Below, one piece after another: positions 1,060 through 4,501 of a stretch of 64,000 bases of DNA. Numbering within the stretch: the stretch's first letter is position 1; every line of letters begins with the position of its first letter. Made by a program: the position numbers and the translations under genes. The DNA is from Calcarisporiella thermophila CBS 279.70 (lineage: Eukaryota; Fungi; Calcarisporiellomycota), in assembly GCF_041956535.1 (NCBI RefSeq), contig NW_027192202.1:391895-455894 (forward strand). Reading direction: 5' to 3'. The notes under the pieces are model-generated. The model made no database searches. It saw only the letters and a list, made by a program, of their open reading frames with translations, and had not been told where the DNA came from.

Positions 1060-2330
1060 ATGACTTCCGAATCGAAACCAATTCAGGTTGGCGCTGCCAA
1101 TACGCTAGAGTATCGTGTCTATCATGGTATGGAAGTTTTTGTCGCGATGTGGACATGAATTTGCCTTAGTACATGACGATATTATAATAGAAAAGCATGG
1201 TCATTCATCTTCATTCTTCCACGATATTCCACTCTATGCCGATAAAGAGAGAGGAATATATAATATGATTGTCGAAATACCACGTTGGACGAACGCTAAA
1301 CTTGAAGTATAAAATATCCGCTATTTTTGGTTTTGGATAAATACTTACAGTTGAGAACATAGATCTCAAAGGAAGAGCCGTTCAATCCTATTAAACAAGA
1401 TATCAAAAAAGGTAAGCTCCGCTACGTGCGCAACTGTTTTCCTCATCACGGGTACATTTGGAACTACGGAGCCTTCCCGCAGGTAAGGCGATTGTTACGC
1501 GTCAGATACTAGGTAGTATTCCAAAATAGAAGCTTTTATAGACATGGGAAGATCCAAATTTGATCCACCCTGAGACGAAGGCCCGTGGTGATAATGATCC
1601 TCTTGACGTGTGTGAAATCGGTGAGCAGGTTGGATATACTGGTCAGGTGAAACAGGTTAAAGTGCTTGGAGTGATGGCGTTGATTGATGAGGGGGAGACT
1701 GATTGGAAAGTGATTGTGATTGATGTTAACGATCCGCTTGCGAACAAACTCAATGGTGATTATTCGTAATATCCGTACGCTCGAGGTTTTTTTCGCTAAA
1801 AAAAACTATTTCATCGTTAGATATTGAGGATGTTGAAAGGCATCTCCCCGGACTTATCCGTGCGACCAACGAATGGTTCCGCATCTATAAAATTCCTGAC
1901 GGTAAGCCTGAGAATCAGTTTGCCTTCAGTGGCGAGGCGAAAAACAAGGTGACTTAAAACATTTCAACGACGATGTCAAATTAAGATTTGAGATTGTATT
2001 CTCCTATCCCTTTAGAAATATGCCCTGGATGTAATTAATGAGTGCCATGAAGCATGGAAACGTCTTATTACGGGCGTCATACCCCCTAAGACAGAGAAAC
2101 ACAATATTCAAGTGTAAGCTTTGCGATTACGACTGCTGAGCTATAAGATGGCTGATATTTAGTTTGTATACTTTCGATGTAGCCTAAATCTCACCGTTGA
2201 AAACAGTCCCTACAGGGTGGCACCTGATAACAACGTGGTCCCCAATATATCCAGAGAGCATGCGAAACCTGCAGCACCCATTGACCCTTCGATTGATAAG
2301 TGGTTTTTTCTTTCAGGGAATCAAATATAG
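1060..2330 (+). CDS. IPP1: Inorganic pyrophosphatase, family I (multi-exon)
   Basis: Spliced exons give [21 protein letters not shown]..., [63 protein letters not shown], and end [16 protein letters not shown]. Introns are GT-AG. Confidence 0.97.
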
Positions 2331-3019
2331 CGCCTCACTGTTGTCCCTCAAAGGCCATCTCTAAGCTATGAGTCGGGGTTAAGCGGAAAAATAAACCTAC
2401 TAATTGTGCTGATATAATGAATAAGTTTTTGGAAGTCTCCATTATATTATATTGTGATATAATTTGGTTTCAAAAAGATAGGCTCTTCTGCAATCACTGG
2501 ACAATATTGATCAAGCTTTAGTCCATGATAATATCAGGTCTCTTTCTATCATTAGGCTCCGGAAGCAAAATTAAAGTGGAACATCAGCTATTGAGCAGCT
2601 TGTGATGTCTGCGCAAGCTCCCAAGTTACTGGAACCACCAAGTTGGAAACCTTACTGTATATTTAGAGAAATCCCCCGAATTCAAACTTTCTTGGGAATA
2701 ATTTCCGGGTGCAAAATCAAGTGGCGATAACTAGGTCAAAGAACATCTGAAATGCAGTGGCTATAGCGGCCTTGTTAATGATGATATAGAATGGCGATGG
2801 AAGATTGGAAAGGGAGAATAAGCTTTCCCTATTTTTAGAACAAAGTACATTAGTGGCAGTATTTTTGAAACGATTTAATTTAAATCCTAATTTACACAGC
2901 GATTCTATTGAATTTTCTTTGGAATTTTATTTTGCTTACGCCGCCAGCCCACACGGACCGGCCCCCCAAAAAGTTTCTCCATCTTTGAGAATTGATCGGA
3001 TCATCCCTATGTCACGAAG

Positions 3020-4501
3020 ATGAACGGCATAGAGCAACTTCCATGCTATGAGCAAGCTATAAACAATACCCCTCATTCAGGACAATTGCATTCATCTACC
3101 GGATCAACCGCATTGTTAGATTTAGAGGGCGGGCATGCATCACTTGGCCACATACCCTCCGAACTCAACTTTGAAATGGAGTTGGTCGGCGAACCAACTT
3201 TACGCTCCCCTAGATATCTCTGCGGCACTATGCTCGCGGGGCGGTACCTTTTACTTGGCCATGCGCGAGGCTTGGATGTTGTCGATATCTCTCTTAGAAA
3301 TAACGCTAAAAGAAAGGTTATAATCGAAGGAACGCGATTTAAGCAATTGCGAGTGGTTGAAGAGTGTAACATTATGTTGGCGTTAGCAGGAAGAACAAAT
3401 CAGATCCGATGCTATAATTTAGATGCAATTTTGAATATGATTGAAGGAGCAACACCCAATTCACCAATTTCCGAGAATTCGAGATTTACATCGAATTCCA
3501 ACATTCAAAATGGAAGGGACCCCATCACCAGCGGTAATGAACAGAATGGAAACCATCACAGAGAGTTCGCGTTAGCTTCTTCATCTTCCAACAAGCGATT
3601 AAAGAATAAAGAGTCTGAATATTTCAAAATCCCTGAAACCGAAGAGTCTCGCCTATTTGACGTAAAAACCACACCCGCATTCGCATATCTTATTGTTCTC
3701 TCGGATGCAAAGACAATCAAACTCTTCCAGCGCTCAGATGGCCCTTCACTTCAGCCATTTGTAAAGTTGAAGTCGTTCTGGGTTCCCAGCGATCCTGTCT
3801 ATGTCGCATTGGCTCACGATCGTCTCAAGCAACCACAGAATATTATTGCAGTGTTCTCGGAAGGGGGAGCAAGTTTGATCGATTTACGAGAGAGTACTGT
3901 CAAGGAGGTAAAGGTTTCTAGTAGCGTATTTCATCCGCCCCCCTCAGTCTCTTCAATGCCGCGATATTTATCCCAATCGCCGCCAAAGAACGAAAAGCGC
4001 AAGGAAACCGTTGGTTCTTGGTGCTCGCTTGTTCAGACCCCTTTTGATATTTCAGTCATTGATCCCGGGCATATAGAACCCGACTCTTCGTTTCCACCGC
4101 CCTCTTACGATTCGGCCCTCCTCGAGGCAGAGCCTGACCTAACTGCTAGATCCCCTTTGCTCTACCTTGCTACCCGTGGGAGACGATCTCGTATCATCGA
4201 CCATCGTGGTCTGCCTTTTTCCACCCTCGTTTATGAGTGGTCCGACTCTCCTCGCCACTTCGAATTCTTCCAACCAAGCCCCTCCTCCGCTTATATCATC
4301 GCGTTCCTGAGTTCAAGCATTGAGATTATAGATGTGAACTCACACACCTCGTTGCAACTCGTGAGAGGAGTCCCCTTCCAATTCCTTACGAATTATCACC
4401 CATCCGAAGAGAAGCCCAGTGGTTTCCCCGGAGTGTATTGGTGCTGCTTTTTGAAAGATAAAACCCATCTCTATCGAATCAAACCACACATGAGCCAGTA
4501 G
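3020..4501 (+). CDS. Intronless standalone CNH (citron-homology) domain protein, 493 aa, with PY-type motifs
   Basis: YLLLGHARGL...RFKQLRVVEECNIMLALAGRTNQIRCYNL and the C-terminal WSDSP...YIIAFLSSSIEI resemble CNH beta-propeller motifs. No kinase or GEF domain in the ORF. Confidence 0.75.
   Translation: MNGIEQLPCYEQAINNTPHSGQLHSSTGSTALLDLEGGHASLGHIPSELNFEMELVGEPTLRSPRYLCGTMLAGRYLLLGHARGLDVVDISLRNNAKRKVIIEGTRFKQLRVVEECNIMLALAGRTNQIRCYNLDAILNMIEGATPNSPISENSRFTSNSNIQNGRDPITSGNEQNGNHHREFALASSSSNKRLKNKESEYFKIPETEESRLFDVKTTPAFAYLIVLSDAKTIKLFQRSDGPSLQPFVKLKSFWVPSDPVYVALAHDRLKQPQNIIAVFSEGGASLIDLRESTVKEVKVSSSVFHPPPSVSSMPRYLSQSPPKNEKRKETVGSWCSLVQTPFDISVIDPGHIEPDSSFPPPSYDSALLEAEPDLTARSPLLYLATRGRRSRIIDHRGLPFSTLVYEWSDSPRHFEFFQPSPSSAYIIAFLSSSIEIIDVNSHTSLQLVRGVPFQFLTNYHPSEEKPSGFPGVYWCCFLKDKTHLYRIKPHMSQ

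Follow-up and report, generated by a model that had tools for sequence, protein, structure and literature searches.

The pyrophosphatase gene and its paralogue

The DNA analysed here (the window) is a 64,000-nucleotide stretch of the Calcarisporiella thermophila CBS 279.70 genome, which carries on its plus strand, at positions 1060-2330, an IPP1-type Family I inorganic pyrophosphatase (PPase) gene, VTP21DRAFT_1680. The gene has seven exons (1060-1126, 1191-1306, 1363-1482, 1542-1755, 1821-1948, 2016-2113, and 2183-2330), and their translation, 296 amino acids ending in GNQI, is identical to the NCBI entry. The PF00719 domain covers residues 48-230 (E 3.5e-53, 180 bits against a curated cut-off of 23.5), yeast Ipp1 matches over the full length (E 1e-138), and the catalytic and metal-binding residues, assigned from the yeast Ipp1 alignment (K59, E61, R81, Y96, D118, D120, D123, D150, D155, K157, Y195, and K196), are invariant across 60 sequences. 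The codon of V248 is split at the end of exon 6 (2016-2113, plus strand). This exon is followed by the annotated last intron (2114-2182, plus strand; 69 nt, phase 2, donor GTAAGC), which has a branch-like CTGAT 28 nt upstream of its end and a position shared with most orthologues and with the paralogue. The last exon (2183-2330, plus strand) encodes residues 249-296, a conserved C-terminal arm with the invariant residues N250, K287, and W288. On the same strand, an AATAAA at 2390-2395, a likely polyadenylation signal, lies 60 nt past the normal stop, and the corresponding distance in the paralogue is 63 nt. Upstream of the ATG at 1060 we found neither a PTS2 motif nor a leader, and an in-frame TAG lies four codons upstream. 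Our literature search returned no paper on VTP21DRAFT_1680.

Some further features of the locus deserve mention. In the 5' flank of the gene, CTAAC/CTAAT motifs (961-979) are followed by CAAG at 979, and a TCCTAG is present at 1047 (1045-1047); these are possible ends of a 5' UTR intron. The YTRAY branch motif is absent from five of the six introns of VTP21DRAFT_1680 (within 1127-2015); in the paralogue, one intron out of eight lacks it. Further along, positions 3020-4501 hold an intronless open reading frame of 493 codons with a stand-alone CNH domain (PF00780, residues 74-294).

The C. thermophila genome contains exactly two PPase genes. The second, VTP21DRAFT_8542, lies on the minus strand of contig C4 (4059 to about 2515 of locus L004) and encodes 327 amino acids ending in GNHL. 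Here an upstream in-frame ATG adds a 31-residue leader rich in Arg and Ser and devoid of acidic residues, which from its composition could be a mitochondrial presequence; VTP21DRAFT_1680 carries no leader of this type. Through its two start codons the paralogue probably serves both mitochondria and cytosol, and a search of the genome found no separate mitochondrial PPase. The two genes are sisters in the tree (support 100/96), with a branch about four times longer for VTP21DRAFT_1680 (0.17) than for the paralogue (0.041). Synonymous sites between them are saturated, and so the duplication is old. In the collections searched we found no true orthologue of the VTP21DRAFT_1680 duplicate; thus, with none to compare, missing conservation of any feature peculiar to this copy is weak evidence. 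The SNL-like C-terminus that is common in early-diverging fungi has been lost from both copies. VTP21DRAFT_1680 is also altered at the conserved N-terminal sites R8I, T27H, P28S, V29S, and P31F (window 1060-1220), and these changes, together with its roughly fourfold faster evolution, suggest a relaxed or changed function.

A candidate second acceptor in the last exon and the SKL frame

An earlier, sequence-only reading of this DNA had proposed that the last intron can close at a second acceptor inside the last exon, giving a peroxisomal isoform of the enzyme that ends in SKL. The elements on which this proposal was built are indeed in place. The donor at 2114 is in phase 2 and the normal acceptor AG is at 2182; a second AG occurs at 2315-2316, after the codons TTT TTT CTT TCA. 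It closes a pyrimidine tract (2304-2316, plus strand) made by the F-F-L-S-G codons, and depends on the Ser codon TCA. The joining of 2114 to 2316 is phase-compatible and would give 265 amino acids, residues 1-248 followed by a tail ending in KAISKL, with a stop at 2369-2371. Branch-like motifs precede this AG within 2281-2297 (plus strand), in conserved I-D codons: TTGAC (branch A 2284) at 33 nt and TTGAT (A 2296) at 21 nt upstream. The TTGAT is also found in the paralogue, without an AG behind it, since AG is absent from the S-G junction of that gene. The tail belongs to the -1 reading frame, which is open on the plus strand from 2300 to the TGA at 2369-2371, the tail itself being read from 2317. 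The AATAAA at 2390 lies downstream of this stop, which thus falls within the probable mRNA. As in cryptic-PTS1 isoforms, then, the alternative junction is in frame with a canonical PTS1 and a stop codon.

The 265-residue form could arise if minor transcripts used branch A 2296 and acceptor 2316; the resulting SKL PPase would be imported by Pex5 and would clear the PPi released by acyl-CoA ligases. We judge this unlikely, though not lightly dismissed. The paralogue would in that case supply mitochondria (from its upstream ATG) and cytosol, and VTP21DRAFT_1680 cytosol and peroxisome, and the restriction of the mitochondrial-type leader to the paralogue speaks for such a division. Also on its side are the junction in phase with SKL, the branch motif 21 nt upstream of what is the top-scoring acceptor of the region, and the position of the SKL stop ahead of AATAAA.

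The strength attributed to this acceptor was borne out in part. With a matrix built from 58 introns of homologous fungal PPase genes, a small set from mixed species, AG 2316 scores 1.31 and is the best AG in 2120-2420, ahead of the normal acceptor (0.94). Real acceptors span this value, although their median, 1.98, is higher. Over 528 kb of the C. thermophila genome, on both strands, acceptors scoring at least as high as AG 2316 occur 0.93 times per 250 nt. The geometry of the candidate intron tells against its use. At 203 nt (2114-2316) it is 2.5 times the longest of the 14 introns of both PPase genes, which measure 56-83 nt, and its splicing would skip the AGs at 2162, 2182 (the normal acceptor), 2206, 2215, 2254, 2274, and 2300, the last of which sits between the branch motifs and AG 2316. 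Among the top 120 homologues no transcript-derived short form is found, which counts against the spliced isoform only weakly, as the RNA-derived normal form is absent from them too.

In an alternative scenario the ribosome would slip back by one nucleotide on G-UUU-UUU (W288-F290), or a non-canonical splice near the stop would lead into the SKL frame, giving a nearly full-length PPase in which W288 and the dimer arm are retained; we consider this very improbable. The short 12-residue tryptic peptide expected by the sequence-only reading would come from such a product, whereas the spliced form would give a longer one of 17 residues. In favour of a slip, SKL lies in the -1 frame, which is open from 2300, and the TTT TTT of VTP21DRAFT_1680 contrasts with TTC TTC in the paralogue and in most homologues; moreover, the structural objection to an SKL form, set out below, would vanish. 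Nevertheless, the G-TTT-TTT run (2303-2309, plus strand; W288-F289-F290) is an imperfect slippery site, a heptamer that does not follow XXXYYYZ, and the folding of the downstream sequence is no better than that of shuffles (z -0.6 to +0.3). The U6 run also fits a general AT drift, no GT donor was found near the normal stop that would lead into the SKL frame without loss of the arm, and the literature searched offers no precedent for such a route to a PTS1.

Other ways of reaching a peroxisomal signal at this locus were tried and discarded. Read-through of the normal TAG gives a tail ending in LIVLI, which has no PTS1, and the product of intron retention terminates at V248. SKL can also be reached through an acceptor at 2353 with donors at 1949, 2112, 2217, or 2236, at the price of weak donors or of still larger deletions.

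How much of this would chance alone produce? The candidate acceptor itself appears to need little explaining: the conserved IDKWFF codons supply tract and branch motifs, in the paralogue as well, and TCA adds the AG. TCA is the commonest Ser codon of VTP21DRAFT_1680 (4 of 11), and GC3 is 0.45 in this gene against 0.63 in the paralogue. An I-to-L change at residue 291 (homologues have 49 Ile and 6 Leu) improves the pyrimidine tract. When the 3' UTR was shuffled behind a fixed acceptor and phase, 0.08% of the tails ended in SKL and 0.42% in [SAC][KRH][LM]; random genome frames gave 0.07% and 0.39%. The chance of an SKL or PTS1-like end is thus about 0.1-0.5% per gene, an approximate null that takes acceptor and phase as given. 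For some 10,000 genes (an assumed number), about 10 SKL and 40-50 PTS1-like cases are therefore expected per genome through such a route. The SKL coincidence is unusual for a single gene, yet expected genome-wide, and it is the cases in metabolic enzymes that get noticed.

The C-terminal arm and the homologous loci

The sequence-only reading was correct in that the candidate splice removes the last 48 or so residues (249-296) and keeps the catalytic domain (48-230), but the lost part is not a dispensable extension. N250, K287, and W288, invariant across 60 fungal PPases, all lie inside it. Across residues 276-293 only one position is changed between the two copies (pN 0.024, pS 0.90), and the last exon is under purifying selection. 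The arm with its KWFF motif, a dimer contact, is present in the 296-residue product and missing from the proposed 265-residue one. W288 aligns with W279 of yeast Ipp1, a residue that we take to act in this contact; a literature search for W279 mutants found none. In the predicted monomer residues 241-280 are ordered (pLDDT 84-94) and the last 16 residues are not, which would fit a segment that becomes ordered by the partner subunit. A single-sequence fold of residues 1-248 reached a pLDDT of 31, too low to inform on the structure of the short form. The C-terminal extensions hold the yeast PPase dimer together, while protist PPases without such an arm are active and dimerise by other means (PMC5507929). 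All catalytic residues (Pfam domain 48-230; invariant columns) lie within 1-248 and are kept in the 265-residue form. With the catalytic domain in place and armless protist enzymes as an analogy, the short form may have activity, and it would then work as a monomer or as the partner of a full-length subunit. Even so, where the enzyme of a cryptic-PTS1 isoform remains intact and folded, here the catalytic domain stays and the conserved dimer arm goes.

We compared the site with the corresponding region of other fungal PPase genes. Loci from Bifiguratus, Endogone, Umbelopsis, Mortierella, Actinomortierella (three), Gryganskiella, Paraglomus, Diversispora, Ambispora, and Basidiobolus, as well as the paralogue, were splice-aligned, while that of Entomophthora was read in three frames without splice alignment. 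AG is absent from the S-G junction in all 14 of these annotated loci, and none yields a strict PTS1 through an alternative acceptor or read-through; in Bifiguratus, Umbelopsis, Endogone, and the paralogue there is no hidden PTS1 at all. AG occurs at this junction in 2 of 67 distinct metagenome loci, and in both cases no PTS1 follows. The expectation that relatives would share a PTS1 in the same alternative frame therefore failed, acceptor and signal being combined in 0 of the 14 annotated and 0 of the 67 metagenome loci; the conservation of the hidden signal that marks cryptic-PTS1 isoforms is not seen in this sample, which does not include a true orthologue. As side observations, a group of fungal PPase genes among the soil metagenome loci L016-L032 is interrupted precisely at KWFFIS|G, at the same position as AG 2316 of VTP21DRAFT_1680, by very short introns of about 31-40 nt, with a last exon encoding GSAL or GSSL. 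The C. thermophila PGK (L116) and GAPDH (L119) show no read-through PTS1 of the kind known from other fungi: PGK ends in SKA followed by TGA GGG, and read-through of GAPDH ends in NSL.

Several homologues nevertheless approach a peroxisomal signal by other routes. Many PPases of Mortierellomycota, Glomeromycota, Zoopagomycota, and chytrids (among P0038-P0156) end in SNL, PNL, ANL, or SQL, and many basidiomycete PPases have PTS2-like leaders, so that an old weak PTS1 may possibly have been replaced later by PTS2. In Diversispora epigaea the PPase gene Glove_22g77 (L012:3095-3230) is annotated with a terminal intron, the donor of which overlaps the stop; according to the depositor's annotation, the spliced form ends in MFCSKI and the retained form in TSNM. 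As a possible source of a peroxisomal PPase made by splicing, this gene makes a stronger case than the VTP21DRAFT_1680 site. Two fungal-type metagenome PPases, L083 and L014 (short records with an intron-free 3' end), end in GTSQL, and stop read-through would extend them to tails ending in SRL (L083) and MRL (L014). A GRL end in Actinomortierella wolfii was treated as chance, being lost in A. ambigua. In all the other ways of acquiring a peroxisomal signal, whether met in the homologues or described in the papers, the C-terminal arm is retained.

These ends raise the possibility that a peroxisomal PPase of C. thermophila relies on a weak normal C-terminus (the NHL of the paralogue, derived from SNL, PNL, or SQL ends) or on piggy-back import of a dimer, with SKL irrelevant. 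The frequency of SNL, PNL, ANL, and SQL ends in early-diverging fungi and the GNHL of the paralogue are in its favour, but several relatives end in TTV, QTV, TTI, or STI with no peroxisomal signal found. NHL is not, to our knowledge, a canonical PTS1. We hold this scenario to be improbable; it is compatible with a coincidental origin of the SKL tail and not exclusive of it.

A probably coincidental SKL tail and the known peroxisomal isoforms

The explanation we consider fairly likely, and prefer, is that only the full-length cytosolic enzyme has a function, acceptor and SKL having arisen as by-products of conserved codons, of a drift towards AT, and of chance. The probabilities that we attach to this and to the other readings are judgements and were not computed. 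VTP21DRAFT_1680 would be an ordinary, fast-evolving duplicate cytosolic PPase gene, and the gene model together with the selection on its last exon points to the 296-residue protein as the selected product. The conserved IDKWFFxSG peptide imposes both a motif resembling a branch point and a run of pyrimidines on every fungal PPase gene; a codon drift toward AT may have turned the Ser codon into TCA, creating AG 2316; and the -1 frame behind it would stop at SKL in the 3' UTR by chance. AG 2316 would then be unused, or used as splicing noise that leads to an unstable, dimer-defective protein. The outlying intron length, the seven AGs skipped, and the invariant residues removed all favour this explanation, as do the absence of the site from the 14 annotated loci, the occurrence of chance acceptors about once per 250 nt, and the commonness of TCA. 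Against coincidence, an exact SKL has a probability of about 0.1% per gene and is met here in a family known to gather peroxisomal signals; AG 2316 outscores the normal acceptor, with I291L improving its tract; the SNL-like end has been lost in both copies; and armless PPases are active in protists. Overall, the indirect evidence leans against a peroxisomal isoform of VTP21DRAFT_1680, and chance appears likelier than a real isoform.

The strongest case that can be made for function is that after the duplication VTP21DRAFT_1680 gained a working acceptor in the codons of the dimer-contact motif, and that a minor transcript swaps the arm for SKL to give an active, monomeric peroxisomal PPase (or, less likely, that the same tail is made by a -1 slip); taken together, we regard this as doubtful while granting it some weight. 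If it were true, an early-diverging fungus would add one more route to the repeated re-invention of peroxisomal PPase in eukaryotes, and a fungal PPase would work without its dimer arm, a result of interest to specialists in peroxisomes and splicing rather than a new kind of system. If the tail is due to chance, the case is a caution: the conserved KWFFxSG codons are a ready-made acceptor, and tens of SKL-like frames are to be expected per genome.

Peroxisomal PPase isoforms as a concept are already published (Stiebler et al. 2014, PMC4207609; reviewed in PMC9549241), and their existence in fly, worm, mammals, and Ustilago speaks for the spliced isoform. The peroxisomal form is produced by PTS2 in U. 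maydis Ipp1 and by read-through in C. elegans pyp-1 and mammalian PPA1/PPA2, and PPase activity is present in rat liver peroxisomes (PMC4207609). In D. melanogaster Nurf-38 it arises by alternative splicing (PMC4207609), and the broad mechanism is like that of the VTP21DRAFT_1680 candidate. Enzyme family and proposed purpose, the removal of PPi from fatty-acid activation, are the same in all of them. However, the read-through and PTS2 enzymes remain whole, whereas the candidate isoform, as predicted from the sequence, would lose 48 conserved residues.

Alternative 3' splice sites give peroxisomally targeted isoforms of MDH in Y. lipolytica and A. fumigatus and of GND in C. albicans (PMC7491326), and cryptic signals of fungal GAPDH and PGK were described by Freitag 2012, as cited in PMC4207609. 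These cases resemble VTP21DRAFT_1680 in having one donor, two acceptors, and a minor product with a peroxisomal signal, and for C. albicans GND an isoform at 0.1% of the mRNA can suffice (PMC7491326), which leaves room for a rare transcript here. The MDH acceptors, though, lie 4 nt from each other and alter a single residue, with RNA-seq support and conservation over hundreds of millions of years, and GND likewise has RNA support and deep conservation; in these published fungal cases the splice site moves by a few bases and the enzyme stays whole (PMC7491326), which weighs against the spliced isoform. The two acceptors of VTP21DRAFT_1680 are separated by 134 nt, and the candidate one sits deep in a coding exon and is seen in a single gene. 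We do not class the site with the cryptic-PTS1 splice isoforms, as it lacks both their conservation and their intact enzyme.

The normal product of VTP21DRAFT_1680 shares its active-site residues and C-terminal arm with S. cerevisiae Ipp1 (PDB 1WGJ and related). Unlike the yeast case, C. thermophila has two lineage-specific copies, one with a long branch and changes such as R8I and P31F. The nearest parallel among fungal PPases is D. epigaea Glove_22g77, which likewise reaches a PTS1-like end through alternative 3' splicing; its intron is a different one, not homologous to the VTP21DRAFT_1680 site, and the whole enzyme is kept. The wider pattern in the family, SNL-like ends, a terminal-intron SKI, a read-through SRL, and the PTS2 of basidiomycetes, is better supported than the VTP21DRAFT_1680 site.
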